Part shown: one piece after another, positions 1-56,447 of the stretch | Position numbering within the stretch: the stretch's first letter is position 1 | How the letters are laid out: each line of letters starts with the position of its first letter | Origin: Paramoeba atlantica | Lineage: Eukaryota; Protista; Discosea | Length of the DNA stretch: 64,000 bases | Direction of reading: 5' to 3' | NCBI GenBank assembly: GCA_977017575.1 | Contig: CDRNVI010000083.1 | Coordinates: 310,001-374,000, forward strand | The notes under the pieces: generated by a model | What the model saw: only the letters and a program-made list of their open reading frames with translations | Told to the model about the DNA's origin: nothing | Databases searched by the model: none | Position numbers and translations under genes: made by a program

Positions 1-3000
1 CCTTTCTTTTGTTAAGACCCTTTCTTTTGTTAAGAACCTTTCTTTTGTTAAGACCCTTTCTTTTGTTAAGACCCTTTCTTTTGTTAAGACCCTTTCTTTT
101 GTTAAGACCCTTTCTTTTGTTAAGACCTTTTCTTTTGTTAAGACCCTTTCTTTTGTTAAGACCCTTTCTTTTGTTAAGCCCCTTTCTTTTGTTAAGACCC
201 TTTCTTTTGTTAAGCCCCTTTCTTTTGTTAAGCCCCTTTCTTTTGTTAAGCCCCTTTCTTTTGTAAAGCCCCTTTCTTTTGTTAAGACCCTTTCTTTTGT
301 TAAGACCCTTTCTTTTGTTAAGACCCTTTCTTTTGTTAAGCCCCTTTCTTTTGTTAAGACCCTTTCTTTTGTTAAGACCCTTTCTTTTGTTAAGACCCTT
401 TCTTTTGTTAAGACCCTTTCTTTTGTTAAGACCCTTTCTTTTGTTAAGACCCTTTCTTTTGTTAAAACCCTTTCTTTTGTTAAGCCCCTTTCTTTTGTTA
501 AGCCCCTTTCTTTTGTTAAGACCCTTTCTTTTGTTAAGACCCTTTCTTTTGTTAAGACCCTTTCTTTTGTTAAGACCCTTTCTTTTGTTAAGCCCCTTTC
601 TTTTGTTAAGACCCTTTCTTTTGTTAAGACCCTTTCTTTTGTTAAGACCCTTTCTTTTGTTAAGACCCTTTCTTTTGTTAAGACCCTTTCTTTTATTAAG
701 ACCCTTTCTTTTGTTAAGACCCTTTCTTTTGTTAAGCCCCTTTCTTTTGTTAAGCCCCTTTCTTTTGTTAAGACCCTTTCTTTTGTTAAGCCCCTTTCTT
801 TTGTTAAGCCCCTTTCTTTTGTTAAGACCCTTTCTTTTGTTAAGACCCTTTCTTTTGTTAAGACCCTTTCTTTTGTTAAGCCCCTTTCTTTTGTTAAGAC
901 CCTTTCTTTTGTTAAGACCCTTTCTTTTGTTAAGACCCTTTCTTTTGTTAAGACCCTTTCTTTTGTTAAGACCCTTTCTTTTGTTAAGCCCCTTTCTTTT
1001 GTTAAGACCCTTTCTTTTGTTAAGACCCTTTCTTTTGTTAAGACCCTTTCTTTTGTTAAGACCCTTTCTTTTGTTAAGACCCTTTCTTTTGTTAAGACCC
1101 TTTCTTTTGTTAAAACCCTTTCTTTTGTTAAGCCCCTTTCTTTTGTTAAGCCCCTTTCTTTTGTTAAGACCCTTTCTTTTGTTAAGCCCCTTTCTTTTGT
1201 TAAGACCCTTTCTTTTGTTAAGACCCTTTCTTTTGTTAAGACCCTTTCTTTTGTTAAGCCCCTTTCTTTTGTTAAGACCCTTTCTTTTGTTAAGACCCTT
1301 TCTTTTGTTAAGCCCCTTTCTTTTGTTAAGACCCTTTCTTTTGTTAAGCCCCTTTCTTTTGTTAAGACCCTTTCTTTTGTTAAAACCCTTTCTTTTGTTA
1401 AGCCCCTTTCTTTTGTTAAGACCCTTTCTTTTGTTAAGCCCCTTTCTTTTGTTAAGACCCTTTCTTTTGTTAAGACCCTTTCTTTTGTTAAGCCCCTTTC
1501 TTTTGTTAAGACCCTTTCTTTTGTTAAGACCCTTTCTTTTGTTAAGACCCTTTCTTTTGTTAAGCCCCTTTTTTTTGTTAAGACCCTTTCTTTTGTTAAG
1601 ACCCTTTCTTTTGTTAAGACCCTTTCTTTTGTTAAGACCCTTTCTTTTGTTAAGACCCTTTCTTTTGTTAAGACCCTTTCTTTTGCTAAGACCCTTCCTT
1701 TTGTTAAGACCCTTTCTTTTGTTAAGACCCTTTCTTTTGTTAAGACCCTTTCTTTTGTTAAGACCCTTTCTTTTGTTAAGACCCTTTCTTTTGCTAAGAC
1801 CCTTCCTTTTGTTAAGACCCTTTCTTTTGTTAAGACCCTTTCTTTTGTTAAGACCCTTTCTTTTGTTAAGACCCTTTCTTTTGTTAAGACCCTTTCTTTT
1901 GTTAAGACCCTTTCTTTTGTTAAGACCCTTTCTTTTGTTAAGACCCTTTCTTTTGTTAAGACCCTTTCTTTTGTTAAGACCCTTTCTTTTGTTAAGACCC
2001 TTTCTTTTGTTAAGACCCTTTCTTTTGTTAAGACCCTTTCTTTTGTTAAGACCCTTTCTTTTGTTAAGACCCTTTCTTTTATTAAGATCCTTTCTTTTGT
2101 TAAGACCCTTTCTTTTGTTAAGCCCCTTTCTTTTGTTAAGCCCCTTTCTTTTGTTAAGACCCTTTCTTTTGTTAAGCCCCTTTCTTTTGTTAAGACCCTT
2201 TCTTTTGTTAAGACCCTTTCTTTTGTTAAGACCTTTTCTTTTGTTAAGACCCTTTCTTTTGTTAAGCCCCTTTCTTTTGTTAAGACCCTTTCTTTTGTTA
2301 AGACCCTTTCTTTTGTTAAGACCCTTTCTTTTGTTAAGACCCTTTCTTTTGTTAAGACCCTTTCTTTTGTTAAAACCCTTTCTTTTGTTAAGCCCCTTTC
2401 TTTTGTTAAGACCCTTTCTTTTGTTAAAACCCTTTCTTTTGTTAAGACCCTTTCTTTTGTTAAGACCCTTTCTTTTGTTAAGCCCCTTTCTTTTGTTAAG
2501 ACCCTTTCTTTTGTTAAGACCCTTTCTTTTGTTAAGCCCCTTTCTTTTGTTAAGCCCCTTTCTTTTGTTAAGACCCTTTCTTTTGTTAAGACCCTTTCTT
2601 TTGTTAAGCCCCTTTCTTTTGTTAAGACCTTTTCTTTTGTTAAGCCCCTTTTTTTTGTTAAGACCCTTTCTTTTGTTAAGACCCTTTCTTTTGTTAAGAC
2701 CCTTTCTTTTGTTAAGACCCTTTCTTTTGTTAAGACCCTTTCTTTTGTTAAAACCCTTTCTTTTGTTAAGCCCCTTTCTTTTGTTAAGACCCTTTCTTTT
2801 GTTAAGACCCTTTCTTTTGTTAAGACCCTTTCTTTTGTTAAGCCCCTTTCTTTTGTTAAGACCCTTTCTTTTGTTAAGACCCTTTCTTTTGTTAAGACCC
2901 TTTCTTTTGTTAAGACCCTTTCTTTTGTTAAAACCCTTTCTTTTGTTAAGCCCCTTTCTTTTGTTAAGCCCCTTTCTTTTGTTAAGACCCTTTCTTTTGT

Positions 3001-6000
3001 TAAGACCCTTTCTTTTGTTAAGACCCTTTCTTTTGTTAAGACCCTTTCTTTTGTTAAGACCCTTTCTTTTGTTAAGACCCTTTCTTTTGTTAAGACCCTT
3101 TCTTTTGTTAAGACCCTTTCTTTTGTTAAGACCCTTTCTTTTGTTAAGCCCCTTTCTTTTGTTAAGACCCTTTCTTTTGTTAAGACCCTTTCTTTTGTTA
3201 AGACCCTTTCTTTTGTTAAGCCCCTTTTTTTTGTTAAGACCCTTTCTTTTGTTAAGACCCTTTCTTTTGTTAAGACCCTTTCTTTTGTTAAGACCCTTTC
3301 TTTTGTTAAGCCCCTTTCTTTTGTTAAGACCCTTTCTTTTGTTAAGACCCTTTCTTTTGTTAAGACCCTTTCTTTTGTTAAGACCCTTTCTTTTGTTAAG
3401 CCCCTTTTTTTTGTTAAGACCCTTTCTTTTGTTAAGACCCTTTCTTTTGTTAAGACCCTTTCTTTTGTTAAGACCCTTTCTTTTGTTAAGCCCCTTTCTT
3501 TTGTTAAGACCCTTTCTTTTGTTAAGACCCTTTCTTTTGCTAAGACCCTTCCTTTTGTTAAGACCCTTTCTTTTGTTAAGACCCTTTCTTTTGTTAAGAC
3601 CCTTTCTTTTGTTAAGACCCTTTCTTTTGTTAAGACCCTTTCTTTTGCTAAGACCCTTCCTTTTGTTAAGACCCTTTCTTTTGTTAAGACCCTTTCTTTT
3701 GTTAAGACCCTTTCTTTTGTTAAGACCCTTTCTTTTGTTAAGACCCTTTCTTTTGTTAAGACCCTTTCTTTTGTTAAGACCCTTTCTTTTGTTAAGACCC
3801 TTTCTTTTGTTAAGCCCCTTTCTTTTGTTAAGCCCCTTTCTTTTGTTAAGACCCTTTCTTTTGTTAAGACCCTTTCTTTTGTTAAGCCCCTTTTTTTTGT
3901 TAAGACCCTTTCTTTTGTTAAGACCCTTTCTTTTGTTAAGACCCTTTCTTTTGTTAAGACCCTTTCTTTTGTTAAGACCCTTTCTTTTGTTAAGACCCTT
4001 TCTTTTGTTAAGACCCTTTCTTTTGCTAAGACCCTTCCTTTTGTTAAGACCCTTTCTTTTGTTAAGACCCTTTCTTTTGTTAAGCCCCTTTCTTTTGTTA
4101 AGACCCTTTCTTTTGTTAAGACCCTTTCTTTTGTTAAGACCCTTTCTTTTGTTAAGCCCCTTTCTTTTGTTAAGACCCTTTCTTTTGTTAAGACCCTTTC
4201 TTTTGTTAAGCCCCTTTCTTTTGTTAAGACCCTTTCTTTTGTTAAGCCCCTTTCTTTTGTTAAGACCCTTTCTTTTGTTAAAACCCTTTCTTTTGTTAAG
4301 CCCCTTTCTTTTGTTAAGACCCTTTCTTTTGTTAAGACCCTTTCTTTTGTTAAGACCCTTTCTTTTGTTAAGCCCCTTTCTTTTGTTAAGACCCTTTCTT
4401 TTGTTAAGACCCTTTCTTTTGTTAAGCCCCTTTCTTTTGTTAAGACCCTTTCTTTTGTTAAGCCCCTTTCTTTTGTTAAGACCCTTTCTTTTGTTAAGAC
4501 CCTTTCTTTTGTTAAGACCCTTTCTTTTGTTAAGACCCTTTCTTTTGTTAAGACCCTTTCTTTTGTTAAGACCCTTTCTTTTGTTAAGACCCTTTCTTTT
4601 GTTAAGACCCTTTCTTTTGTTAAGACCCTTTCTTTTGTTAAGACCCTTTCTTTTGTTAAGACCCTTTCTTTTGTTAAGACCCTTTCTTTTGTTAAGACCC
4701 TTTCTTTTATTAAGATCCTTTCTTTTGTTAAGACCCTTTCTTTTGTTAAGCCCCTTTCTTTTGTTAAGCCCCTTTCTTTTGTTAAGACCCTTTCTTTTGT
4801 TAAGCCCCTTTCTTTTGTTAAGACCCTTTCTTTTGTTAAGACCCTTTCTTTTGTTAAGACCTTTTCTTTTGTTAAGACCCTTTCTTTTGTTAAGCCCCTT
4901 TCTTTTGTTAAGACCCTTTCTTTTGTTAAGACCCTTTCTTTTGTTAAGACCCTTTCTTTTGTTAAGACCCTTTCTTTTGTTAAGACCCTTTCTTTTGTTA
5001 AAACCCTTTCTTTTGTTAAGCCCCTTTCTTTTGTTAAGACCCTTTCTTTTGTTAAAACCCTTTCTTTTGTTAAGACCCTTTCTTTTGTTAAGACCCTTTC
5101 TTTTGTTAAGCCCCTTTCTTTTGTTAAGACCCTTTCTTTTGTTAAGACCCTTTCTTTTGTTAAGCCCCTTTCTTTTGTTAAGCCCCTTTCTTTTGTTAAG
5201 ACCCTTTCTTTTGTTAAGACCCTTTCTTTTGTTAAGCCCCTTTCTTTTGTTAAGACCTTTTCTTTTGTTAAGCCCCTTTTTTTTGTTAAGACCCTTTCTT
5301 TTGTTAAGACCCTTTCTTTTGTTAAGACCCTTTCTTTTGTTAAGACCCTTTCTTTTGTTAAGACCCTTTCTTTTGTTAAAACCCTTTCTTTTGTTAAGCC
5401 CCTTTCTTTTGTTAAGACCCTTTCTTTTGTTAAGACCCTTTCTTTTGTTAAGACCCTTTCTTTTGTTAAGCCCCTTTCTTTTGTTAAGACCCTTTCTTTT
5501 GTTAAGACCCTTTCTTTTGTTAAGACCCTTTCTTTTGTTAAGACCCTTTCTTTTGTTAAAACCCTTTCTTTTGTTAAGCCCCTTTCTTTTGTTAAGCCCC
5601 TTTCTTTTGTTAAGACCCTTTCTTTTGTTAAGACCCTTTCTTTTGTTAAGACCCTTTCTTTTGTTAAGACCCTTTCTTTTGTTAAGACCCTTTCTTTTGT
5701 TAAGACCCTTTCTTTTGTTAAGACCCTTTCTTTTGTTAAGACCCTTTCTTTTGTTAAGCCCCTTTCTTTTGTTAAGACCCTTTCTTTTGTTAAGACCCTT
5801 TCTTTTGTTAAGACCCTTTCTTTTGTTAAGCCCCTTTTTTTTGTTAAGACCCTTTCTTTTGTTAAGACCCTTTCTTTTGTTAAGACCCTTTCTTTTGTTA
5901 AGACCCTTTCTTTTGTTAAGCCCCTTTCTTTTGTTAAGACCCTTTCTTTTGTTAAGACCCTTTCTTTTGTTAAGACCCTTTCTTTTGTTAAGACCCTTTC

Positions 6001-9000
6001 TTTTGTTAAGCCCCTTTTTTTTGTTAAGACCCTTTCTTTTGTTAAGACCCTTTCTTTTGTTAAGACCCTTTCTTTTGTTAAGACCCTTTCTTTTGTTAAG
6101 CCCCTTTCTTTTGTTAAGACCCTTTCTTTTGTTAAGACCCTTTCTTTTGCTAAGACCCTTCCTTTTGTTAAGACCCTTTCTTTTGTTAAGACCATTTCTT
6201 TTGTTAAGACCCTTTCTTTTGTTAAGACCCTTTCTTTTGTTAAGACCCTTTCTTTTGCTAAGACCCTTCCTTTTGTTAAGACCCTTTCTTTTGTTAAGAC
6301 CCTTTCTTTTGTTAAGACCCTTTCTTTTGTTAAGACCCTTTCTTTTGTTAAGACCCTTTCTTTTGTTAAGACCCTTTCTTTTGTTAAGACCCTTTCTTTT
6401 GTTAAGACCCTTTCTTTTGTTAAGCCCCTTTCTTTTGTTAAGCCCCTTTCTTTTGTTAAGACCCTTTCTTTTGTTAAGACCCTTTCTTTTGTTAAGCCCC
6501 TTTTTTTTGTTAAGACCCTTTCTTTTGTTAAGACCCTTTCTTTTGTTAAGACCCTTTCTTTTGTTAAGACCCTTTCTTTTGTTAAGACCCTTTCTTTTGT
6601 TAAGACCCTTTCTTTTGTTAAGACCCTTTCTTTTGCTAAGACCCTTCCTTTTGTTAAGACCCTTTCTTTTGTTAAGACCCTTTCTTTTGTTAAGACCCTT
6701 TCTTTTGTTAAGACCCTTTCTTTTGCTAAGACCCTTCCTTTTGTTAAGACCCTTTCTTTTGTTAAGACCCTTTCTTTTGTTAAGACCCTTTCTTTTGTTA
6801 AGACCCTTTCTTTTGTTAAGACCCTTTCTTTTGTTAAGACCCTTTCTTTTGTTAAGACCCTTTCTTTTGTTAAGACCCTTTCTTTTGTTAAGACCCTTTC
6901 TTTTGTTAAGCCCCTTTCTTTTGTTAAGACCCTTTCTTTTGTTAAGACCCTTTCTTTTGTTAAGACCCTTTCTTTTGTTAAGCCCCTTTTTTTTGTTAAG
7001 ACCCTTTCTTTTGTTAAGACCCTTTCTTTTGTTAAGACCCTTTCTTTTGTTAAGACCCTTTCTTTTGTTAAGACCCTTTCTTTTGTTAAGACCCTTTCTT
7101 TTGTTAAGACCCTTTCTTTTGCTAAGACCCTTCCTTTTGTTAAGACCCTTTCTTTTGTTAAGACCCTTTCTTTTGTTAAGACCCTTTCTTTTGTTAAGAC
7201 CCTTTCTTTTGTTAAGACCCTTTCTTTTGCTAAGACCCTTCCTTTTGTTAAGACCCTTTCTTTTGTTAAGACCCTTTCTTTTGTTAAGACCCTTTCTTTT
7301 GTTAAGACCCTTTCTTTTGTTAAGACCCTTTCTTTTGTTAAGACCCTTTCTTTTGTTAAGACCCTTTCTTTTGTTAAAACCCTTTCTTTTGTTAAGCCCC
7401 TTTCTTTTGTTAAGCCCCTTTCTTTTGTTAAGACCCTTTCTTTTGTTAAGACCCTTTCTTTTGTTAAGACCCTTTCTTTTGTTAAGACCCTTTCTTTTGT
7501 TAAGACCCTTTCTTTTGTTAAGACCCTTTCTTTTGTTAAGACCCTTTCTTTTGTTAAGCCCCTTTCTTTTGTTAAGACCCTTTCTTTTGTTAAGACCCTT
7601 TCTTTTGTTAAGACCCTTTCTTTTGTTAAGCCCCTTTTTTTTGTTAAGACCCTTTCTTTTGTTAAGACCCTTTCTTTTGTTAAGCCCCTTTCTTTTGTTA
7701 AGACCCTTTCTTTTGTTAAGACCCTTTCTTTTGTTAAGACCCTTTCTTTTGTTAAGACCCTTTCTTTTGTTAAGCCCCTTTTTTTTGTTAAGACCCTTTC
7801 TTTTGTTAAGACCCTTTCTTTTGTTAAGACCCTTTCTTTTGTTAAGACCCTTTCTTTTGTTAAGACCCTTTCTTTTGTTAAGACCCTTTCTTTTGTTAAG
7901 ACCCTTTCTTTTGCTAAGACCCTTCCTTTTGTTAAGACCCTTTCTTTTGTTAAGACCCTTTCTTTTGTTAAGACCCTTTCTTTTGTTAAGACCCTTTCTT
8001 TTGTTAAGACCCTTTCTTTTGCTAAGACCCTTCCTTTTGTTAAGACCCTTTCTTTTGTTAAGACCCTTTCTTTTGTTAAGACCCTTTCTTTTGTTAAGAC
8101 CCTTTCTTTTGTTAAGACCCTTTCTTTTGTTAAGACCCTTTCTTTTGTTAAGACCCTTTCTTTTGTTAAGACCCTTTCTTTTGTTAAGCCCCTTTCTTTT
8201 GTTAAGCCCCTTTCTTTTGTTAAGACCCTTTCTTTGGTTAAGACCCTTTCTTTTGTTAAGCCCCTTTTTTTTTGTTAAGACCCTTTCTTTTGTTAAGACC
8301 CTTTCTTTTGTTAAGACCCTTTCTTTTGTTAAGACCCTTTCTTTTGTTAAGACCCTTTCTTTTGTTAAGACCCTTTCTTTTGTTAAGACCCTTTCTTTTG
8401 CTAAGACCCTTCCTTTTGTTAAGACCCTTTCTTTTGTTAAGACCCTTTCTTTTGTTAAGACCCTTTCTTTTGTTAAGACCCTTTCTTTTGTTAAGACCCT
8501 TTCTTTTGCTAAGACCCTTCCTTTTGTTAAGACCCTTTCTTTTGTTAAGACCCTTTCTTTTGTTAAGACCCTTTCTTTTGTTAAGACCCTTTCTTTTGTT
8601 AAGACCCTTTCTTTTGTTAAGACCCTTTCTTTTGTTAAGACCCTTTCTTTTGTTAAGACCCTTTCTTTTGTTAAGACCCTTTCTTTTGTTAAGACCCCTT
8701 CTATTGTTAAGACCCTTTCTTTTGTTAAGACCCTTTCTTTTGTTAAGACCCTTTCTTTTGTTAACACCCTTTCTTTTGTTAAGACCCTTTCTTTTGTTAA
8801 GCCCCTTTCTTTTGTTAAGACCCTTTCTTTTGTTAAGACCCTTTCTTTTGTTAAGACCCTTTCTTTTGTTAAGCCCCTTTTTTTTGTTAAGACCCTTTCT
8901 TTTGTTAAGACCCTTTCTTTTGTTAAGACCCTTTCTTTTGTTAAGACCCTTTCTTTTGTTAAGACCCTTTCTTTTGTTAAGACCCTTTCTTTTGTTAAGA

Positions 9001-21075: not shown

Positions 21076-21167
21076 TAACAAAAGAAAGGGTCTTAACAAA
21101 AGAAAGTTAAGACCCTTTCTTTTGTTAAGCCCCTTTCTTTTGTTAAGACCCTTTCTTTTGTTAAGAC
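21076..21167. repeat. Short S1 tract with an internal strand inversion (22-bp perfect inverted repeat, 8-nt loop)
   Basis: 21076-21097 TAACAAAAGAAAGGGTCTTAAC is the reverse complement of 21106-21127. Confidence 0.95.
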
Positions 21168-22882: not shown

Positions 22883-22885
22883 GTA

Positions 22886-29429: not shown

Positions 29430-29523
29430 GCAATAGCGGGGCTATACATGTAGGTGTTTCAGTAGGTGGCCGCCACCATTAACACATGCGCTCGGGTGGT
29501 AGTATTACGTGCGAGCGGGCTGG

Positions 29524-45200: not shown

Positions 45201-45675
45201 GCAGGAAAGCGCCTTAGCATAAGTAAGCGAAGTGTCAGTTGACGAAAGCTTTTCCACCCTTTGCATTTGTTTTAAGATAGGCGAGGGGTTATCGGATCTT
45301 AGCGACGTGTTAGCCCTCACCCGCGCTCTCCGGGATAACGTGTGCATGCTGGTACGTGGAGGTGGTGGCGAAAAGGGATGCGCAGGCGGCGGTGGCGGAC
45401 ATGTTCTCATTTTACACCGTACGGATGCTGACGTTGATGGTGGTGATGGCGTCGTCGGCGGTGGCGGCCGTGGTGGTGATTGTTCGGGTGATTGTTCGAG
45501 CGGCGGGGGTGGTGACGGTGGTGGTTGTGGGGTGGGCTTCTCTTTCTTCTTCCGGCGTGTGGGGGGAGGCGACTGGACAATGGGAGCTACCCCGGCATCC
45601 TTCGCCTTGGCACGCGTCAGCATGCCCATTTTCGGAAAAAGAGTAGGAAAAAAAAACAACAAGGTACAGAAGGTT
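42205..45675 (-). mobile_element. Element B copy 4
   Basis: Near-identical; a few SNPs. Confidence 0.93.
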
Positions 45676-46708
45676 GTTAAGACCCTTTCTTTTGTTAAGA
45701 CCCCTTCTATTGTTAAGACCCTTTCTTTTGTTAAGACCCTTTCTTTTGTTAAGACCCTTTCTTTTGTTAACACCCTTTCTTTTGTTAAGACCCTTTCTTT
45801 TGTTAAGACCCTTTCTTTTGTTAACACCCTTTCTTTTGTTAAGACCCTTTCTTTTGTTAAGACCCTTTCTTTTGTTAAGACCCTTTCTTTTGTTAAGACC
45901 CTTTCTTTTGTTAAGACCCTTTCTTTTGTTAAGACCCTTTCTTTTGTTAAGACCCTTTCTTTTGTTAAGACCCTTTCTTTTGTTAAGACCCTTTCTTTTG
46001 TTAAGACCCTTTCTTTTGTTAAGACCCTTTCCTTTGTTAAGACCCTTTCTTTTGTTAAGACCTTTTCTTTTTTTAAGACCCTTTCTTTTTTTAAGACCCT
46101 TTCTTTTGTTAAGACCCTTTCTTTTGTTAAGACCCTTTCTTTTGTTAAGACCCTTTCTTTTGTTAAGACCCTTTCTTTTGTTAAGACCCTTTCTTTTGTT
46201 AAGACCCTTTCTTTTGTGAAGACCCTTTCTTTTGTTAAGACCCTTTCTTTTGTTAAGACCCTTTCTTTTGTTAAGACCCTTTCTTTTGTTAAGACCCTTT
46301 CTTTTGTTAAGACCCTTTCTTTTGTTAAGACCCTTTCTTTTGTTAAGACCCTTTCTTTTGTTAAGACCCTTTCTTTTGTTAAGACCCTTTCTTTTGTTAA
46401 GACCCTTTCTTTTGTTAAGACCCTTTCTTTTGTTAAGACCCTTTCTTTTGTTAAGACCCTTTCTTTTGTTAAGACCCTTTCTTTTGTTAAGACCCTTTCT
46501 TTTGTTAAGACCCTTTCTTTTGTTAAGACCCTTTCTTTTGTTAAGACCCTTTCTTTTGTTAAGACCCTTTCTTTTGTTAAGACCCTTTCTTTTGTTAAGA
46601 CCCTTTCTTTTGTTAAGACCCTTTCTTTTGTTAAGACCCTTTCTTTTGTTAAGACCCTTTCTTTTGTTAAGACCCTTTCTTTTGTTAAGACCCTTTCTTT
46701 TGTTAAGA
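45676..46708. repeat. S1 spacer, 1033 bp
   Basis: 57 units plus 7 nt. Confidence 0.97.
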
Positions 46709-49700
46709 GGGCACTAATCTGGTGGAGGAGGCCAGCGACGTGTAACTTCCTTTAGCACTTGTAGCTCGTAATATGTCGGCTTGGCGTGGTTCTTCCATCA
46801 ATTTGTCGCGTATGTATTTGTGGTGCAGGTCTTCTGTTGTTGGTTCATCGGCGGAAGGGTTATTATGATTTGGCTGAGTAGTTAGCTGTGTGGCCAAACC
46901 CGTGCAAGGGGCGGGAGCTGAAAGATATATTGGTCGCTCCGTTGCCATTTGCTTGGATTTAGTATACGCTGCTTCCCTAATTGGTTCGGAAGGAGTGATA
47001 CCTAACCCGCCTTTCTTAAGAGGAAGCCGTGTCCATGAGATTTGTTTTTCTGTTAGTCCGCCAAACCATGAGGAAAGAGTGTTGGAAACTTCTCCGTCAA
47101 ATTGTCTCGTGAGCTCCGATGTATTTTCCGGATGATGTACGCGGATATGATATCGGTGGCGTACATTAATGCACTTGGAAAGCAAAAGAACAGAAACATT
47201 GTTTGCCCCCATTTGCTGAAGACGTCGGAATGCTGTACGGTGTTTTTGAAGCATCTGAACGAGTTTTTCGCTGACCAGATGACTGTCGCCCACGAATGCT
47301 CCTAGAACCTTTGTGGCGCCTGGCTCCCAGTTTACACCTTCCTGCATTAACTGATGCGGCAAAGGGATATGATTGATTCCCCCGAACCAAATACATTTAC
47401 TGGAGGAAGTCTCTACGCGTTTCGACGTCAACAGTTCCTTAAGCCGTAAGAATGCATTGGATACCATTTCTGCGTCAGTCGATGCAAAATTGATGTCATC
47501 AACGAATGCATAAATACGTAGCGTGGGAAATTCGGACGCGATTGTTTCCAAGATTGGTTGAAGAAAAGCGCAGAACAAGATAGTGGATAAGGGGGACCCT
47601 TGGCGCACGCCAGCAGCGCTCATTACAGTGTTGCAAAGTCGGCCATCTTTTCCATAGTAAAGCAGCTCGGATGGAGACCCGTACTCCGCATTGAAGAGAC
47701 GTAAGAATGGACGTAGGCTGTGGAATCCAAAGACTGCTCTGGCAATCTCGTCCCGTGATGGGGAGTTGAAGGCGTTCTTAAGGTCAATCGATAAGATGGC
47801 GCATCCTTCCGCGTAGCGTTCATCAAGTTCATGCACAACTTTTTCGCAGCCGGATTTAATCATCACTCCGAACTGATGTGGCGAAAACAGAGGGGGTAAT
47901 GTTTTCTCGTGGCGCTGTAGTAATACAATTTCGGCGATTTTGAGCCACACCTCACCGACGGCAATCGGTCGAATTCCTTGCGCTGTTTTCGGAATTGCGA
48001 CGAGTCGCGCTCTTTTAAGACGCTTCATTACTTCTTCAGGCAGTACCCCGTTGATCAGGTCTGTGAACATATGAGTTAAGCTCAAACAGCAAACCTCATC
48101 GTCCAGGAGAATACGTAGTATCGAGTCCGTCGTACCCGTAGGCCCCGGTGAAGCACCTTTCGCGAGTCGTCTGCCAGCCTCTCTCAGCTCGCTGGGGGTA
48201 ATGCATGCGGTGATAGGGGCGTCTTGTGGCAATCGGAAACTCGTTGGGAGATTCGGGTGGAGTGCTATGAGTTTTTCCACGATTTCTTCGTCGCTTTGTG
48301 ATTTCGCCGTAATTTCTCGGTCCATAATTTGCGAAGCTTTCGAGACACACCCGTCGAGGACCAGGCTTGTCGCCTTTTTAATAGCGCGTTTATCGTTCGC
48401 GTCAGCGTTCGGTACAGTTCCTTCTGATCTTTGTAATTCATGATTCTCTTGCGATGATTCTTGATCGTCATGTGAGTCCAATGGACGGCGACGGCGGCGC
48501 TTCACCGTAACTTTTCGAATAGTTGCCAGAGAGTATTTCATGGCAGAGAGAACTCTATGCCAGATGCGGTAGCGGTGTGGATAAGAACTATCGGCATATT
48601 CCCGCATTATGTCGCGATAAATCGCAACGACGCAAGGAATATATTCTGGAGACACTGTGCGTAATGTCGGCATCGGTTCGCGATCGAGATCGTCCTCAGT
48701 ATGTTGTCGGCGCGAGTACGTTTTACTCGGTTCGCTATTCTGTTGTACGCGCGGTTCCCACAACAGTCGAAAGATGCGAACGTTGGAATGAGGGGGAATA
48801 TGCCCATCAAACACCTCACCAATATTGTGTCCAATGATGCCTTCGTAACTTAACGCTAGTTTTCGAACGTTTCGCACTTTCCGAGATGTTTTAACAGTGC
48901 CACTCGATACGTTTAGGATGGGCGTGCAGTCAAAGCTCCATGCTACCAGGCACCGATCCCCTGGCTTCGCGTTGTGAGACAATCTGGATACTTCGTCCGG
49001 GGGAATGGGAAAGTGAACAGCAGGATCAATTTCTTGACACATGGAGTTGGCAAGAATTGTCAACGACTCACTCGAAGATAGTGCCAGCGTCTTTGCTGAA
49101 GCAGTGTCGTCAGCGTTTCCTTCGCAGTCGAAAAATTGTTCTGGTTCTTCACTGTCGTTATGGTTATTGTTTTCCGACGGCGGGTTCTCGTGGTGTCCTT
49201 CCTCTTCTGCATCTATCTGCTAATTCCTCTATCTGCTAAAACTGGTGCGTTTACCGTCGCTTTCTTGCCGCGTCGACAAAAAAGGTTCGAAAACAGGTCC
49301 TTCGAAAACAATTTCGCGGGTATTTTAACCGTTGCTTTGTTCGCTGGAGTTGGCGGGGGGAGCGGTGGAGGGAGAAGTGGGGTATGCGGCTGGGGGGTAT
49401 GAGACTCAGTTGTGATACGCGACTCGATGACTTCCTCCGGAAGAGGCGACGTGTTACACGGCTCAGAAATTCTATGCGACTCGATGTCCTGTGCAGAGGG
49501 GAGTTTCGCTAGCCTTTCTTGGCGTAAAGCTTCGTGAAATTCCCAGCGAGCTTGTTTGCGCTCTTTTCTTTGGAGGTAGAATTCTTCGTCAGAAAGAATC
49601 CGAGCTGACGGATTTAGCGGCCGCAGAACTATATCATTGATCGGTACCTCTGCGTCTTCTTCTCTAACGGCACCGGCTCTGTGTGGCGATCTGGGGGCGG

Positions 49701-50179
49701 GGGAGCAGGAAAGCGCCTTAGCATAAGTAAGCGAAGTGTCAGTTGACGAAAGCTTTTCCACCCTTTGCATTTGTTTTAAGATAGGCGAGGGGTTATCGGA
49801 TCTTAGCGACGTGTTAGCCCTCACCCGCGCTCTCCGGGATAACGTGTGCATGCTGGTACGTGGAGGTGGTGGCGAAAAGGGATGCGCAGGCGGCGGTGGC
49901 GGACATGTTCTCATTTTACACCGTACGGATGCTGACGTTGATGGTGGTGATGGCGTCGTCGGCGGTGGCGGCCGTGGTGGTGATTGTTCGGGTGATTGTT
50001 CGAGCGGCGGGGGTGGTGACGGTGGTGGTTGTGGGGTGGGCTTCTCTTTCTTCTTCCGGCGTGTGGGGGGAAGCGACTGGACAATGGGAGCTACCCCGGC
50101 ATCCTTCGCCTTGGCACGCGTCAGCATGCCCATTTTCGGAAAAAGAGTAGGAAAAAAAAACAACAAGGTACAGAAGGTT
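46709..50179 (-). mobile_element. Element B copy 5
   Basis: Near-identical; followed by only 24 nt of S1 (50180-50203). Confidence 0.93.
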
Positions 50180-50463
50180 GTTAAGACCCTTTCTTTTGTT
50201 AAGCATAATGTTTGCCCTCCTGAATTTCAAATCGTAAACTTATAGAAATACAATCACTATTTTACACAAGTTTACATATTATAAAGGAACCTAATATTCT
50301 GATCTGCGTATTAGGAGGAAGAGGAGGATGGGAGTAGCTCGGCTAGCGCATCGTCTTTGGCTAGGAAAGAGCAAGCAACTAGGCGGAAGAAGCAAAGTGA
50401 AAGAAGAAGCAAAGTGAGAGAAGACTGGGGGAGGGAGAGTATTCGAACACACTTAGTGACCTT

Positions 50464-53184
50464 CTAGAAGCGAAGTCCACCTATCCAGTTATCCTTCGGA
50501 ATGTACTCACGTAGTTGAGATACCACCGTGTATGCGGACATCTTTTCAATCTCAAGTTGAAATCCCTGTCGTACATTGTCGTAGTTCATTTTTGCGCGCT
50601 GCGCTATTGCCTTTAAAAGTGCCTTGGTGTCATTGTGTAGAAGGCCACAGTCTGAGGTGGCCAGACAACGGAAGTATTCACTATCGACACCCTTTTCGGA
50701 GACATATTTCTTGATTTTTCGATCGATCGCTTGTTGTATGAGTGCTGAACTGGTCTGTTTCGCGTAACTGTTGCAACAGGTGTGCACCACCGTGAAGTCA
50801 TAGAGCACTTCCCCCATGTGTGGCCACATGATGGCGAGATCAGGTCCCGAGCGGATACGGCGTGCTTTACATGGATGCTGTTCGGCTACGTCGGCGGCGA
50901 TGGAGCATTTACATTTGGTGCAGTAATATGAGGAGTGAATGCGCGGTTCAGTGACGTTCGGAAGACCTGCTTTGGAACATAACTCTGATAGGTAGCGGAC
51001 GATGTGGGAATGTTTGCGTGTGCAGTTCATACCAGAGCAACGAGAGCAGCCTGCAACATGTGGAATGATGCTGGATGGGGATTCTTGGGTGCAGCATCCA
51101 GGGCATGTGACTTTGGCAGGAGCTTGGGGTAAACTGATTCCTAACCGCATCATGAGTGTGTATCGAAATAAATAAGGATTGATATAATTGCTCGTGCTTT
51201 CGAGATGCAAGTTGTTCTCCATAGTGCGTTTCATTACAAGCTCCAATTGCGAATTCTTCCGTAGCTCGTAAGCCTTCTTTTCGTGTTCTTCTTTCATCTT
51301 CTTTTTCAGCAGCTTCTGGGCGACTTCACTACGACTTTGTCCGTTGGCGTGTACTTTATCTCCACCTTTTATACCTACTGGAGCGTTATTGGGTTTTGGG
51401 TGCTCAACAATAGATTTCCGGGCAGTTTCAAAGTAGTATTTCTGCTTCAAAGTCGAGGAGATCAATCCTAGGCCGCCTAGTTTCTGAGGAAGTACCGCTA
51501 GTTGCAAGGCTTGTGTGTCAGCTCCGCACCATTTCTTAAGAACTTGTTGAACGTGGTCTTCGAAGGCTTCGGCTAGCCGCGTGGTTGCTTCCGGACGATG
51601 AACTCGCAGATGATAATCTTGTCGCGGAATTGTGCATCGACGTAGAATTGCGAGGGACAGATTGCTTGGACCCATTAGCAGGAGTCGACGGAAGAGGCAT
51701 TTGTGTTTTTCCATCTTCCGTAGAAGAAGATCTTTTATCACCTCATTTGCTCCTATGTACGCTCCCAATATTTTAAGCGCATCATTCCGGGAGTTAACAC
51801 CTAAGCGGTTCAGGGACAATAGTTCGTCATCAAATGTAGTATTCTTTTGGAACCATTCACATTTCTGAAACTTGACATGCAGGTTAAGATCACTGGTAAG
51901 TTCGCGCAAGTGCAAGAACGCTGCCCCAAGTGACAACACGTTTTTCGAGCTTAGGGTCACGTCATCCTGGTATGCTCTGATCGTTACGTCGGGATATAGG
52001 CTGGCTACTTCTCGTATTGGGCTTTGTAGAAGGGCACAGAAGTACATGGAGGATAGAGCTGAACCTTGGCGGATTCCGGAAGAACTTTCCAAGACGGCGT
52101 AGAGGGCATTATGCGCGAAGAAGAGGAGCTCCGAAGGTAGCCCATACTCAAAGTAGAACAGGCGCAGGAAAGGTTTGAATATGGGATTGCTTACCAGTAT
52201 TTGTGCAATGGCATCGCGTCGCGGGGTATTATACGCATTGCTGAAATCTACCGTAAGCAACGCATGTCCGTCCTCGTATTCTTGAAGCAATTCGTGGACG
52301 ATGGATTCGCAGGCATTTTTGTGTAGGACTCCTCGTTGAATTGGCGCAAAGAATGTCTTCAAGGTGGTTTCATGTCGCTGCAGTAGAATAGATCCACAGA
52401 TTTTCAAAATAGTGTCTCCCATGGCAACTGGACATATCCCGTTCTGCGGCTTTGGTAGGGCGATGATTCTGCAGCGAGTAAGGCGCTTCCGGACGCTTAG
52501 TGGAACTTCTCCGTTGATTACATCTCGAACCATGTGGCACAGTGAAAGGCATGATACATCATCGTCTACAAGCAACCGCATCATACTCTCACTTAGCCCG
52601 CTTGGTCCGGGGGAAGCTCCACGAGCCAATTTCTCAACTGCCAGACGAAGTTCCGAACTTTCAACAACTCCGATGCGTGGGAAGTCAGCTTCCGGTATTT
52701 GGATAGGGGGTCCATCAGGATGCAATTCTCGTAGTTTCTGAAATTTTTCTTCGGCCGAAAGAGTGGAGTCCTTGTAAACGTTATCTAGAATTCGAGTGGC
52801 TTTCCCCAGATTCCCTGCTTTGGCTGTTCGCAACGCGTTTCGGATCGCGCGCCTGTCGATTTCTAGTTCGGCTCGTTGTTCTGCACTTAGATTTATGCCA
52901 TCTGATAGCTCGTTACGTTCCTTTCGCACGTGTCCCACTCTTTGGGTTCTTCTAATTGCATCCCGCACTGTAGCAAGTGAGTCTCGCGGCGCATTCATAA
53001 ATTTGTGCCAGATCGCTGCTTTCTCAGAATCAAGTTCAACAGTGGCATAGCCTCGGATAATCGCACGGAAGATTGCTACCACATGCACCGCGAAGGATGG
53101 CTCGATGTTGGGAAGGTCCGGGAGGGGGTCGAGATCGCAGCCACTGTCGTCAGACGAGACATTTTCTGATTCGAAATCCACACC
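50464..53184 (-). CDS. RT-RLE portion of element C
   Basis: DFSNAYN, SGIRQGSALS, AYQDD, CPGC..HVAGC, GPDL, YDFTVVH, RKIKKY. The conserved RP motif is changed to CP. Clearly homologous to A and H. Confidence 0.9.
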   Translation of the reverse strand, partial: GVDFESENVSSDDSGCDLDPLPDLPNIEPSFAVHVVAIFRAIIRGYATVELDSEKAAIWHKFMNAPRDSLATVRDAIRRTQRVGHVRKERNELSDGINLSAEQRAELEIDRRAIRNALRTAKAGNLGKATRILDNVYKDSTLSAEEKFQKLRELHPDGPPIQIPEADFPRIGVVESSELRLAVEKLARGASPGPSGLSESMMRLLVDDDVSCLSLCHMVRDVINGEVPLSVRKRLTRCRIIALPKPQNGICPVAMGDTILKICGSILLQRHETTLKTFFAPIQRGVLHKNACESIVHELLQEYEDGHALLTVDFSNAYNTPRRDAIAQILVSNPIFKPFLRLFYFEYGLPSELLFFAHNALYAVLESSSGIRQGSALSSMYFCALLQSPIREVASLYPDVTIRAYQDDVTLSSKNVLSLGAAFLHLRELTSDLNLHVKFQKCEWFQKNTTFDDELLSLNRLGVNSRNDALKILGAYIGANEVIKDLLLRKMEKHKCLFRRLLLMGPSNLSLAILRRCTIPRQDYHLRVHRPEATTRLAEAFEDHVQQVLKKWCGADTQALQLAVLPQKLGGLGLISSTLKQKYYFETARKSIVEHPKPNNAPVGIKGGDKVHANGQSRSEVAQKLLKKKMKEEHEKKAYELRKNSQLELVMKRTMENNLHLESTSNYINPYLFRYTLMMRLGISLPQAPAKVTCPGCCTQESPSSIIPHVAGCSRCSGMNCTRKHSHIVRYLSELCSKAGLPNVTEPRIHSSYYCTKCKCSIAADVAEQHPCKARRIRSGPDLAIMWPHMGEVLYDFTVVHTCCNSYAKQTSSALIQQAIDRKIKKYVSEKGVDSEYFRCLATSDCGLLHNDTKALLKAIAQRAKMNYDNVRQGFQLEIEKMSAYTVVSQLREYIPKDNWIGGLRF

Positions 53185-53460
53185 GAGGGGCCGCACAGGA
53201 CATAAAAGAAAATAACTATAAAGATGAAATAATAATTTGCACCCGCCAAACCCGGCGGCTATAGGATGGGGGTTTGGTGGGTGGGACAAAAAACGCGTAA
53301 AGGAAAAAGATTCTACAAGTAAGTAATCAGTAAATATGTAAATTTTCAGAATACATATTGTAGCTTTTATACATGATTCAATTACAACCCCCTTTCGGGG
53401 AAAAGAAACAATGAAAATTATAACCCCCTTCCGGGGCATTTGACCCGATATTAGCCCCTC
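53185..53460. mobile_element. 276-bp MITE-like insertion with short TIRs (GAGGGGC/GCCCCTC)
   Basis: Removing it joins GNLT to GVDFESEN in one frame of element C. AT-rich interior with two CCCCG(G/A)AAGGGGG hairpins. Confidence 0.75.
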
Positions 53461-54361
53461 GGTTAAATTTCCATGCGTAGACTTCTACTCCTCCAGGTTC
53501 TGGATCGCCGTCTCCACTTGAAGAAGTTTCGTCGCCCGAAGACTGTAGATTTTAATTTTGTCCGACTGTGGAAGGTATAAGACGCCGGCGTTGGAAGGCC
53601 CCGCGTGGACACCCGTTCGAGAAAGGGAGGGAAGGGAGTTCTCTCCAGGAAAAAGTTCATGAGGTATATAAAATAGGTTTGATACTTACTTCGCGAAGTT
53701 GATATTACAGTACTGGTGAAGATAATGTCTTTTACTCTGTTGTCCATGATGGATGTTATATTTCGGTAGCTCTGTAGTTCTACAGATTAAACATTACAGT
53801 TTACATACGCTTACTATATCTGATTGACTATATGTTTTTCTTCCGGAAGTGCAATTCAGTGCCTTTCCCCCATTTCGCCACAGTGTTGTGAACTTGATCT
53901 GCTGCTTTTGTGCTGTTGTTTCGCATCGCCATTTCTCCCTGATCAGCGTCGGAATCACTGTCTAGCGTCATTTGAACACGCTCACTTTCGATGTCACTCT
54001 CTTGCCCGTTTTCAGCTGTTGGAAACGCAAATTGTGTATTGATTTCGCGTGCGTTTCCAGAGTTTTCTTGGTTCGAGACTATTTTGAATTTTTGCGGAGT
54101 AATTTTGATGATGTTCTTTACCGGGGTGATGGTGGGTGTTCCGTGATCGACCCAGTTCTTCGATAAAGGTTCGGCTCCAATGACTCGGATGCGTGGTGTT
54201 TTCTTCGGCTTTTCCGTGGTAGAATTCTTAATTACTGCATCGCTTTTTACGATCTTTTCTTTGCTGTTCGTGTCTTGCGTCCGTATTTTTACAGTTACAC
54301 GACCAGATTTCACATTCATGCTCTTCGGTGTGTTGGCGGATCCCCGAGCAGGGCGCGTCAT
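53461..54361 (-). pseudogene. N-terminal region of element C with stops and frameshifts
   Basis: KWGKG and GPSNAGVLYLPQSDKIKIY match DWGKG and GPSGNLYLPQSTKIKVF of A. TAG at 53485-53487. Confidence 0.75.
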
Positions 54362-54412
54362 AGTGATTAAATCGATATAAAAAAAAATCAACCAACAAGG
54401 TACAGAAAGTTT

Positions 54413-55923
54413 GTTAAGACCCTTTCTTTTGTTAAGACCCTTTCTTTTGTTAAGACCCTTTCTTTTGTTAAGACCCTTTCTTTTGTTAAGACCCTTTCTT
54501 TTGTTAAGACCCTGTCTTTTGTTAAGACCCTTTCTTTTGTTAACACCCTTTCTTTTGTTAACACCCTTTCTTTTGTTAACACCCTTTCTTTTGTTAAGAC
54601 CCTTTCTTTTGTTAAGACCCTTTCTTTTGTTAAGACCCTTTCTTTTGTTAAGACCCTTTCTTTTGTTAAGACCCTTTCTTTTGTTAAGACCCTTTCTTTT
54701 GTTAACACCCTTTCTTTTGTTAACACCCTTTCTTTTGTTAAGACCCTTTCTTTTGTTAAGACCCTTTCTTTTGTTAAGACCCTTTCTTTTGTTAAGACCT
54801 TTTCTTTTGTTAAGACCCTTTCTTTTGTTAAGACCCTTTCTTTTGTTAAGACCCTTTCTTTTGTTAAGACCCTTTCTTTTGTTAAGACCCTTTCTTTTGT
54901 TAAGACCCTTTCTTTTGTTAAGACCCTTTCTTTTGTTAAGACCCTTTCTTTTGTTAAGACCCTTTCTTTTGTTAAGACCCTTTCTTTTGTTAACACCCTT
55001 TCTTTTGTTAACACCCTTTCTTTTGTTAAGACCCTTTCTTTTGTTAACACCCTTTCTTTTGTTAACACCCTTTCTTTTGTTAAGACCCTTTCTTTTGTTA
55101 AGCCCCTTTCTTTTGTTAAGCCCCTTTCTTTTGTTAAGCCCCTTTCTTTTGTTAAGCCCCTTTCTTTTGTTAAGCCCCTTTCTTTTGTTAAGCCCCTTTC
55201 TTTTGTTAAGCCCCTTTCTTTTGTTAAGCCCCTTTCTTTTGTTAAGCCCCTTTCTTTTGTTAAGCCCCTTTCCTTTGTTAAGCCCCTTTCTTTTGTTAAG
55301 CCCCTTTCTTTTGTTAAGACCCTTTCTTTTGTTAAGACCCTTTCTTTTGTTAAGACCCTTTCTTTTGTTAAGACCCTTTCTTTTGTTAAGACCCTTTCTT
55401 TTGTTAAGACCTTTTCTTTTGTTCAGACCCTTTCTTTTGTTAACACCCTTTCTTTTGTTAAGACCCTTTCTTTTGTTAAGACCTTTTCTTTTGTTAAGAC
55501 CCTTTCTTTTGTTAAGACCCTTTCTTTTGTTAAGACCCTTTCTTTTGTTATGACCCTTTCTTTTGTTATGACCCTTTCTTTTGTTAAGACCCTTTCTTTT
55601 GTTAAGACCCTTTCTTTTGTTAAGACCCTTTCTTTTGTTAAGACCCTTTCTTTTGTTAAGACCCTTTCTTTTGTTAAGACCCTTTCTTTTGTTAAGACCC
55701 TTTCTTTTGTTAAGACCCTTTCTTTTGTTAAGACCCTTTCTTTTGTTAAGACCCTTTCTTTTGTTATGACCCTTTCTTTTGTTAAGACCCTTTCTTTTGT
55801 TAAGACCCTTTCTTTTGTTAAGACCCTTTCTTTTGTTAAGACCCTTTCTTTTGTTAAGACCCTTTCTTTTGTTAAGACCCTTTCTTTTGTTAAGACCCTT
55901 TCTTTTGTTAAGACCCTTTCTTT
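54413..55923. repeat. S1 array, ~84 units, with clustered variant units
   Basis: Run of consecutive GTTAAGCCCC units at ~55100-55310; GTTAACACCC and GTTATGACCC clusters. Confidence 0.98.
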
Positions 55924-55926
55924 ACC

Positions 55927-56340
55927 CTTTCTGTACCTTGTTGTTTTCTTACTCTTACAATTATGTCCACCGCCCACGGCAACACTCTCCCAGGGGTGAA
56001 CTTTTCACACGCTGATCGGAAGAATAGCTTACAATCCAATCCCAAGAAGATTCCGCGAATCAGAATAGTGACGAGTGAGAAGGAACTTTCGAAATCATGG
56101 GCAGACCATGGAGCGTACGACTTTCCACCTCGAGAACGAATCAAGGCCAGAGCACGCGATGATGCCGAAATATATTTGTCTCCAATAGATTGTCCGTCGA
56201 ATGTAAGCTCAGATGCCGATTCACGAGACAGCCTTGACAGCGATACCTCAGATACGATGTCCACGGACGGTGACCAGCTAGCAACTGTGTCTTGTTCTAG
56301 ATCAGCTCCGACTTTGTCGTTAAATGAAAAAAAGGAACAA
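55927..56340 (+). pseudogene. Element E 5' fragment (leader plus N-terminal ORF 55963-56355)
   Basis: CTTTCTGTACCTTGTTG leader; PKKIPRIRIV..ELSKSWADHG matches PKKTPRIRVI..PLSKNWVDHG of C. Confidence 0.75.
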
Positions 56341-56447
56341 AAACAAAGGTCTTAACAAAAGCCCGTGGAGCGCATATATTATATACGCGCCGATTACTAT
56401 CAAATGTTCACATTCTAATAAACTAATATCCCTTTCTTTTCTTAAGA

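Follow-up and report, generated by a model that had tools for sequence, protein, structure and literature searches.

We analyzed a 64,000-nt stretch of the genome of the protist Paramoeba atlantica (assembly GCA_977017575.1), referred to here as the window, which corresponds to positions 310,001 to 374,000 of contig CDRNVI010000083.1 (C83). The host uses a spliced leader. An 18-bp satellite, S1 (unit, GGGTCTTAACAAAAGAAA), already recognized in a preliminary description of this DNA, fills positions 1 to 17110 and recurs in smaller blocks as far as 55923; the plus strand of the window carries its C-rich strand. The features of the window are as follows.

1..17110, C-rich strand on plus: S1 satellite, part of a 27.6-kb block (C83:299470-327110) that extends to the left of the window
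17111..21075, plus strand: LINE A, with an intact 1224-aa ORF (17144-20818) encoding a reverse transcriptase (RT), a CCHC motif, and an R2-type endonuclease
21076..21167: S1 pair, 30 nt G-rich (21076-21105) and then 62 nt C-rich
21168..30195, plus strand: DIRS-like tyrosine-recombinase (YR) retroelement with an internal copy of its 3'-terminal 250 bp
30196..50203, minus strand: five block-duplicated units, each an S1 spacer plus a 3'-truncated LINE, B
30406-33874, 34334-37802, 38262-41727, 42205-45673, and 46709-50177, minus strand: the B copies
50204..50252, minus strand: 49-nt YR-head fragment, joined to the truncated 3' UTR of C
50253..54409, minus strand: LINE C (ORF 50464-53439: RT, CCHC, and endonuclease)
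54410..55923, C-rich strand on plus: S1 block
55924..56296, plus strand: fragment whose head is a hybrid between an S1 unit and the spliced leader (3' part)
56297..60049, minus strand: LINE G, without flanking S1
60050..62102, minus strand: S2, a second 18-mer array, split by a ~1.1-kb terminal-inverted-repeat (TIR) element (~60924-62058)

Because the array runs on to the left of the window, S1 blocks are spread over C83:271998-365923, with a total of ~49-50 kb in a single orientation. S1 makes up 0.12% of the genome, and small blocks also occur on at least five contigs other than C83; the blocks examined were a sample from the first 100 of ~2270 matches. Among the matches listed, every S1 block is internal and flanked by non-S1 sequence at both sides, and none stands at a chromosome end with its G-rich strand running 3' outward, which rules out S1 as a telomere. 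On C83, S1 lies at 272-366 kb of a 450-kb contig; the blocks on C2, C4, C9, and C12 occupy internal sites, and that on C24 lies ~6 kb from the contig end, with non-S1 sequence filling the remainder. Literature searches with the S1 unit and with the 3' 17 nt of the leader (the sole leader fragment queried) gave no match. Derivation of S1 from the spliced leader is at most a possibility, the likeness being loose (TCTTAAC.AAAAGA versus CTTTAACGATAAAGA, plus TTTCT and TTGTT in common). S1 loosely resembles both the first 15 nt of the leader and LINE 3' UTR motifs.

At the 5' end of LINE A, just ~6 nt of spliced leader is left. The 3' UTR of A is cut short within a stretch that is continuous in seven other copies, and an A-rich 19-mer comes next. 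The junction with S1, ..AGAAAA|TAAC (21075/21076), had been quoted as the 3' end of A running into G-rich S1; the junction is real, but the S1 beyond it is G-rich for 30 nt only and then flips to C-rich at 21105/21106, the S1 pair as a whole forming an inverted repeat with a 21-bp stem and an 8-nt loop. Reads over 20850-21450 (601 letters; short contigs only) covered the A-tail/S1 junction in three runs of one study; the inverted S1 junction was not bridged by any of them, none of the runs on record as RNA contained the interval, and one run presumed to be RNA had no part of it. Other A-type 3' ends have TTAAGACC-type tails, three of which run into other 17-18-mer arrays. The idea that S1 is a 5' leader array of A was ruled out by five other full-length A copies, which have variably truncated spliced-leader heads and unrelated upstream DNA.

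The YR element is bounded by S1 on either side, as first described, and the two flanks form no simple duplication. Its 3'-terminal 250 bp is repeated ~420 bp upstream, here and in more than 12 other copies, and it has the organization of DIRS-like elements: split/internal terminal copies, no LTRs, and no fixed target duplication. Its RT frame continues in-frame into a nested CRE-like ZnF-RT-endonuclease LINE (ORF 24341-28858). A Pfam search for a tyrosine recombinase in the YR element gave no match, as did an Rfam search of its head, in which no twister was recognizable; a 382-aa ORF (22886-24034) carries R..E, H-x-x-R, and a C-terminal Y at recombinase-like spacing and matches ORFs of two more elements on C4 at 31-33% identity.

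Pfam RVT_1 was matched by A, B, C, and the nested LINE (E values of 1e-13 to 1e-21) and partially by G, and the columns CPGC..H..GC, E-P-R, G-P-D, D-x-T, and K were conserved across 13 sequences. Both hallmarks of LINEs with a restriction-like endonuclease (RLE; R2 type) were present, namely, the RT and a C-terminal CCHC motif with a PD-(D/E)xK endonuclease. The C-terminal domain of A was modeled as a confident fold (pLDDT of 84), and the top seven PDB matches in a fold search with this model were all R2 proteins (E values of 8e-6 to 2e-4), showing that the endonuclease of A, as modeled, has an R2-like fold. A sequence-only PDB search with A returned just weak RT matches to L1, and the nearest named database matches were weak ones to Diplonema hypothetical proteins.

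The junction strings originally quoted for A, B, and C were found in the sequence, as were the 5' junctions of B (GGGTCTTAACA|B) and C (GGGTCTTAACAA|C, in which a 15-16-nt spliced-leader remnant adjoins G-rich S1). The supposed 3' ends of B, C, and G did not hold up. In B, the junction (..GTGCCC|TCTTAAC) cuts the reading frame, and two other B copies continue past it into CCHC/endonuclease coding sequence. The spacers in the B block measure 210, 459, 459, 477, and 1035 bp and are followed by 26 bp of S1; since the five B copies show only 3-6 differences per 3469 bases and their S1 spacers carry the same marker variants, they represent one insertion followed by block duplication. At the C junction (..ATTATG|CTTAAC, 50204/50203), the true partner of S1 is the 49-nt YR 5'-head fragment, which had been counted as the final 49 nt of C; its sequence continues otherwise at no fewer than eight other loci, and the 3' UTR of C itself extends to poly(A) tails elsewhere. 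The junction attributed to G (..TACT|TCTTAAG, 56448/56447) sits within the G 3' UTR, and 19 other copies are 98-99% identical right across it. This UTR contains one S1-like 18-mer (56447-56430) and ends in its own S1-like 18-mer tail (56361-56336), which in all 12 copies checked comprises 1.5-3 units, the number varying by copy. The fragment at 55924..56296 is terminated by the 3' end of G. For annotation purposes, most apparent element ends here are not ends, and five insertions are one event.

The second array, S2, was considered as an expanded 3' tail of LINE H. Other H copies ruled this out: they stop at an A-run ~90 nt before S2, and the 87-nt piece adjoining S2 has other continuations at three further loci. 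The 1.07-kb TIR element inside the array was also ruled out as an 18-mer specialist, having an 8-bp duplication at varied AAAG-rich sites. Five of its ~14 independent copies lie within 18-mer arrays.

The preliminary description had proposed a community of retroelements specialized on S1. Among copies elsewhere in the genome, none of 12 other C 3' UTR copies lay in S1 (several ended in poly(A)), and the same was true of 12 other ends of G and 12 of the YR element. For A, 1 of 13 other 3' ends and none of 5 other 5' ends were in S1, the latter all being headed by the spliced leader with unrelated flanks. Both full-length B copies lie outside S1, with no S1 within 6.5 kb. The 3' UTR family abutting the left edge of the big array had 1 of 16 other independent copies near S1; it has hundreds of dispersed copies, ruling out the CRE-like LINE at that edge as an S1 specialist. 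Most copies were outside S1 in every family that could be tested, and the proposed community thus failed a test set beforehand. Rather than being S1 specialists, A, B, C, G, and the YR element are scattered through the genome as generalists; they are headed by the spliced leader and mostly tailed by poly(A), and the YR element shows no S1 preference. The great majority of copies of a site-specific LINE lie in one target, which is not the case for A, B, C, or G.

It is therefore very improbable, in our judgment, that S1 serves each of several LINE families, and the YR element as well, as a dedicated target in the way that rDNA serves R2. Phase-locked junctions, short duplications centered on TTAAC, the R2-type endonuclease fold, and the predominance of target specificity among RLE-bearing LINE clades (PMC4640811) would all suit such dedication; set against them are the unrelated flanks of nearly all sampled A, B, C, G, and YR copies, which lie outside S1, the misreading as element ends of three of the four 3' junctions quoted, and the reduction of five window insertions to one duplicated event. 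Since the families reside mostly elsewhere in the genome, S1 is a favored hot spot rather than a private landing pad.

Within S1, phasing of the junctions was strong in either orientation. The start of G-rich S1 falls within unit positions 4-10 (mode, 5; most commonly CTTAAC) at no fewer than 13 independent junctions, and the 13 start junctions have 13 different left flanks, on C83, C2, C4, C9, and C24. The near-constant register first described was confirmed as clustering beyond chance once loci outside the window were included (Rayleigh P of 2.5e-5, n = 13; 2e-4 for outside-window junctions alone), and randomness of junctions within the 18-mer, a second outcome set beforehand as refuting, was not seen. 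For G-rich S1, 8 of 15 ends are at AAAAG(A), which is position 15 or 16 (P of ~1e-3), and three of these eight ends adjoin poly(T), i.e., the poly(A) tails of opposite-sense elements. The suggested short duplication centered on TTAAC was likewise borne out: six insertions lying between two stretches of S1 have duplications of 4-9 bp, the length being 6-9 bp in five.

B: TCTTAACA
C chimera: CTTAACAA
B 3' UTR fragment on C9: CTTAACA
753-bp insert on C2: AACAAA
5'-truncated G-like LINE, C83:272204-272621: TCTTTTGTT
Leader-headed, A9-tailed copy, C83:272674-273479: CTTT

A fixed 3' junction position together with a short duplication was found within S1 only. The preliminary interpretation is thus supported in part: S1 is a preferred, phase-specific insertion substrate but no private target of a specialized community. 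Untargeted arrival, with a large neutral satellite retaining what lands in it and with registers produced by microhomology or later rearrangement, strikes us as quite unlikely. It would draw on retrocopies that are abundant genome-wide (the 3' 16-mer of the leader has ~960 dispersed copies), on some 5' junctions lying in clear S1/leader microhomology (TTTCT and TTGTT), and on the presence in S1, too, of a hAT-like MITE whose general preference is for AAAG-rich targets. However, the 3' junctions cluster without flank microhomology, and 2 of 67 flanks sampled family by family adjoin S1, for which a simple binomial estimate gives a P value of ~0.003 given the 0.12% genome share.

We hypothesize, at roughly even chances of being right, that generalist R2-like LINE endonucleases prefer nicking after AAG, which makes S1 a phase-locked hot spot. 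S1 would have collected insertions from elements that are generalist across the rest of the genome: several R2-type LINE families, whose templates would have been RNAs capped by the spliced leader, together with a DIRS-like recombinase element and one small TIR transposon. Reverse transcription would be primed from a nick placed after AAG. A C-rich-strand nick after GTTAAG would yield X|CTTAAC on the element sense strand, a G-rich-strand nick after AAAAG would yield X|CTTTTG for opposite-orientation elements, and a second-strand cut ~8 bp off would leave 7-9-bp duplications. Because the AAG motif occurs once per strand per 18 bp, S1 would be struck more than average DNA and in a constant register. 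Outside S1, CT follows 9 of 26 poly(A)-tailed copies versus ~6% expected, implying a primer strand that ends in AG. We infer from these patterns that the phasing stems from endonuclease nick preference.

Several observations sit poorly with this nick-preference hypothesis. A three-letter motif is a weak rule that dispersed copies follow in part, and the starts scatter over positions 4-10 instead of marking one bond. Poly(A) was present at 0 of 13 CTTAAC sense-strand 3' junctions versus 3 of 8 CTTTTG junctions, an asymmetry that one enzyme acting on one RNA pool would not predict. Several left flanks of S1 are internal points of other elements (the B ORF and the YR head), so that 3'-truncated RNAs must have been templates. 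Moreover, an A-type copy on C24 has S1 on its 3' side only, with none within 8 kb upstream, and fits S1 carried on RNA better than insertion into an existing array.

The main rival explanation, which we regard as unlikely but worth serious consideration, is that S1 itself traveled on RNA, its blocks being reverse-transcribed pieces with fixed ends. The source would be 3' transduction from elements residing within S1 or expansion of S1-like 18-mer LINE tails, and the constant registers would reflect RNA ends or the reverse transcription start, not the target nick site. The variable G tail and the A-type tails that precede other arrays are of the expected kind; isolated ~200-bp blocks on C24 and C2 start and end exactly at both hot registers, that on C24 following the 5'-truncated A copy without upstream S1; and one junction between S1 and a 5'-truncated LINE occurs on both C4 and C9 with different left flanks and S1 lengths. 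RNA-borne S1 nevertheless leaves the two-sided insertions with 4-9-bp duplications, in either orientation, unexplained. A LINE with an exact S1 tail was not found, arrays of 16-28 kb are too large for single RNA copies, and the test case of a tail-derived array (H tail to S2) failed. A further scheme seems to us rather improbable: LINEs would themselves make S1 and sister 17-18-mers as arrays with fixed ends, by reiterated reverse transcription of the short repeat module of a 3' tail. Every unit would then offer the bond preferred by the endonuclease once on each strand, and each array would become a self-reinforcing insertion sink.

Descriptions of target-specific LINEs usually take one family at a time and present it as a single-site specialist. 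In the present case, a single satellite is entered, at fixed bonds and in either orientation, by several generalist families copied from ordinary spliced-leader mRNAs. Should a short nick preference underlie the phasing, a satellite could become a safe retrotransposition sink without true family specificity, and a testable cleavage rule would follow for a group of R2-like enzymes that has received little study. CR1- and L2-type "stringent" LINEs have 3' tails of short tandem repeats with 3-8-nt units. The G 3' end, with its 1.5-3 units of an 18-mer of its own in variable number, is similar, but units here are 17-18 nt, and growth of kilobase arrays from such tails is only a possibility.

Target-specific RLE LINEs include R2 (28S rDNA), CRE/SLACS/CZAR (spliced-leader genes), R4/Dong, NeSL/Togen, and some HERO families (microsatellites) (PMC4640811). 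The elements described here share with them the domain order (RT, CCHC motif, and restriction-like endonuclease) and the type of insertion, in which 3' junctions are precise within a repeated target, 5' junctions are less so, and duplications are short. Those LINEs, however, have almost all their copies in the target, unlike A, B, C, and G, which resemble processed mRNA copies in having the cell's spliced leader at the start and, often, poly(A) at the end. YURE LINEs prefer U2-snRNA-derived satellites (PMC4640811) and so offer a case of RLE LINE preference, not strict specificity, for a satellite; the YURE satellite, however, comes from an ancestral target gene, whereas S1 shows only a loose likeness to the leader and to LINE 3' UTRs. 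In Bombyx mori, the telomeric TTAGG repeats harbor the LINEs TRAS and SART. Their target classes are listed in PMC4640811 and PMC6530143. As in S1, a short tandem repeat is entered at fixed positions, with different bonds for each orientation. The TRAS and SART endonuclease is of the AP type, however, and a given family occurs in the repeat alone and in a single orientation, whereas the S1 case involves an R2-type endonuclease, an internal 18-bp repeat, and families that reside mostly elsewhere.

Junctions with S1, the 18-bp satellite that the preliminary description proposed as a common target of retroelements, were non-random within the 18-mer. With the unit numbered G1 G2 G3 T4 C5 T6 T7 A8 A9 C10 A11-A14 G15 A16-A18 and read left to right, G-rich S1 started at positions 4 to 10 at 13 independent junctions (13 differing left flanks, five contigs), most commonly at C5 (CTTAAC). 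The Rayleigh test on this register gave R = 0.83 and p = 2.5e-5 (n = 13), with p = 2e-4 when only loci outside the window were used, so the proposed phasing is borne out. Of 15 array ends, 8 fell at G15 or A16 (p ~1e-3); three of these eight abut poly(T), i.e., the poly(A) tail of an opposite-orientation element, and a fourth is the 3' end of YR, a putative DIRS-like tyrosine-recombinase element. In start and end classes alike, the would-be priming strand for reverse transcription ends in AAG.

S1 blocks and elements (plain numbers are window positions; the window is C83:310001-374000)
1-17110, S1 main block, C-rich on +
17111-21075, +, LINE A: RT, C-terminal CCHC plus endonuclease region
21076-21105, reversed S1 piece, 30 nt, opposite to remaining S1
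21106-21167, 30196-30405, 33875-34333, 37803-38261, shorter S1 blocks, C-rich on +
41728-42204, 45674-46708, 50178-50203, 54410-55923, shorter S1 blocks, C-rich on +
21168-30195, YR element: ORF with recombinase-like R, H-x-x-R, Y spacing; internal copy of 3' terminus
50253-54409, -, LINE C: RT, C-terminal CCHC plus endonuclease region
56297-60049, -, LINE G: RT, C-terminal CCHC plus endonuclease region
62592-63899, LINE H: RT, C-terminal CCHC plus endonuclease region
C83:281837-298401 and 299470-327110, large S1 blocks, with a 1068-bp TIR element between
C83:298402-299469, that TIR element; relative in the window at ~60924-62058
C83, 272-273.6 kb, three small S1 blocks

The S1 unit is the 18-mer GGGTCTTAACAAAAGAAA, with its C-rich strand on +, and neighboring DNA showed that the array extends leftward beyond the window. 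In the assembly (45.7 Mb, 248 contigs), contig C83 carries ~49 kb of S1, in a single orientation throughout; among the matches listed, contigs C2, C4, C9, C12, and C24 add ~6 kb in small blocks, which together amounts to ~0.12% of the genome. None of the blocks seen lay at a contig end. Orientation reverses at 21105/21106, and the reversal creates an inverted repeat immediately after the 3' end of A, at 21076-21126 (21-bp stem, 8-nt loop); it could reflect integration snap-back or a transduced piece. The A-tail/S1 junction is present in the organism's public runs, as short contigs only; no run recorded as RNA had the A-tail/S1 stretch, nor did one run guessed to be RNA. A literature search found neither the S1 unit nor the 3' 17 nt of the cell's spliced leader in any paper.

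LINEs with a restriction-like endonuclease (RLE) can be target specific (PMC4640811). The last 234 residues of A gave a confident structure model (pLDDT 84) whose best seven PDB matches were all R2 retrotransposon proteins; on the basis of this model, the LINEs with a CCHC-endonuclease region are R2-type and RLE bearing. Among named database entries, those closest to them are distant hypothetical proteins of Diplonema. The YR recombinase ORF was not recognized by Pfam. The YR RT frame continues into a nested CRE-like LINE: 24341-28858 is a single open frame in which a DIRS-type RT makes up the first ~290 aa and a complete CRE-like ZnF-RT-endonuclease LINE follows, most simply a nested insertion staying in frame by chance. 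The leader, reconstructed from 20 dispersed copies, is ~36 nt long and ends in TTTCTGTACCTTGTTG, a 16-mer with ~960 copies scattered genome-wide; remnants head B and C (15 to 16 nt) and A (~6 nt). Partial tandem duplications of its first 11 to 15 nt precede full leader heads (e.g., C83:272674-272703), and poly(A) tails directly abut leader starts, forming head-to-tail trains. The H 3'UTR, at 62260-62600 (-), contains a direct duplication of ~265 bp, and an A-run near 62195 is where other H copies end.

Most of the 3' ends quoted as S1 junctions are not true element ends. That of LINE B, which has an RT and ends short of the CCHC-endonuclease region, is a break inside the ORF; two other copies continue into CCHC coding sequence. 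The five window B copies differ by 3 to 6 per 3469 bases, and two marker units recur from spacer to spacer at equal distance from B; the B-plus-spacer unit was therefore duplicated as a block. The S1-adjacent 49 nt of "C" belong to the head of a YR element, which continues elsewhere (eight other loci) as CTCCATACTG..; this insertion is a chimera of a truncated C 3'UTR and a YR-head fragment. G is not in S1, contrary to the preliminary description: what was read as its junction, at 56448/56447, is one lone S1-like 18-mer within the G 3'UTR, 98 to 99% conserved in 19 other copies, and 12 of 12 copies have their own tail of 1.5 to 3 S1-like units. On the - strand, a G-rich-type unit (56447-56430) and a C-rich-type tail (56361-56336), ~70 nt apart, could form an 11-bp pairing that includes one mismatch, an arrangement conserved in 19 copies that may constitute a candidate 3' recognition stem. 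For A, G-rich S1 does follow as described, but the 3'UTR is cut where seven other copies read on; the order after the cut is an A-rich 19-mer, 30 nt of G-rich S1, and C-rich S1.

The retroelement families are not specialised on S1, contrary to what had been proposed. We searched the genome with each family's ends and read the flanks, and the sampled copies lay almost entirely outside S1. Counts in S1 were 0 of 12 for other C 3'UTR copies (several with poly(A) at differing end points), 0 of 12 for other YR 3' ends (1 of 12 in another 18-mer), and 0 of 12 for other G copies. Other A 3' ends were followed by S1 in 1 of 13 (on C24), by other 17- to 18-mers in 3, and by poly(A) in 2; all five other full-length 5' ends had variable-length leader remnants with unrelated DNA upstream. 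Neither of two full-length B copies had S1 within 6.5 kb. On its left, the big array is bordered by a LINE whose 3'UTR has hundreds of dispersed copies, only 1 of 16 other independent ones being near S1; this 3'UTR family also forms tandem arrays of period ~2.28 kb (C21:358-9739, C22:137527-156036).

S1 borders six insertions at either end, and all six show a duplication, with the proviso that in an 18-bp array an n-bp duplication is indistinguishable from an (18-n)-bp deletion.

Two-sided S1 insertions and their duplications
B: TCTTAACA
C chimera: CTTAACAA
5'-truncated B 3'UTR, C9: CTTAACA
753-bp insert, C2: AACAAA
5'-truncated G-like LINE, C83:272204-272621, other orientation: TCTTTTGTT
Leader-headed, A9-tailed copy, C83:272674-273479, other orientation: CTTT

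Separately, one junction recurs on C4 (458000-467999) and C9 (280500-283500), where G-rich S1 meets a LINE cut off at its ..ASPGPTG.. codons; left flanks differ, and S1 lengths are 198 to 953 bp. Segmental duplication could account for this recurrence, as could retrocopying of a transcript begun in S1. The TIR family is young and non-autonomous (0.56 to 2.5 kb, copies 96 to 100% alike at the end), with an antisense leader copy in the element's interior; insertion is at AAAG-rich sites and duplicates 8 bp of target, a length that would suit a hAT-like MITE. Among independent TIR copies, ~5 of 14 lie within 18-mer arrays (S1, arrays like the window's second one, S2, and a GTGGTCTTAATACAAAAA array). 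At least seven distinct 17- to 18-mers form arrays at other loci, in addition to 60050-60926 in the window; they share a G/T-rich core, TCTTAA- or ATTAA-type letters, and an A-rich run, and often adjoin LINE or YR ends.

Sampled by family with the window's own copies excluded, 2 of 67 flanks were S1 adjacent against a 0.12% target (p ~0.003, our binomial estimate from small numbers); a less conservative count gave 3 of 91. Outside S1, CT followed poly(A) in 9 of 26 tailed copies versus ~6% expected, the same AG-ending primer as at S1 junctions; four of these nine then read into a leader start, which could also come from template jumping. The simplest account covering both orientations and the two-sided insertions, to which we give even chances, is that generalist LINE endonucleases would prefer to nick after AAG, with the two strands cut ~8 bp apart, each S1 unit presenting one such bond on each strand. 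Four observations speak against this as a complete account: poly(A) is never seen in the CTTAAC class, a number of left flanks fall at points inside other elements, S1 lies only downstream of the C24 copy, as if carried on RNA, and the G-type tails are 18-mer modules carried by these LINEs. We therefore retain as the main rival that some of the S1 blocks arrived on RNA. The systems for comparison are TRAS/SART elements and CR1-type tails.
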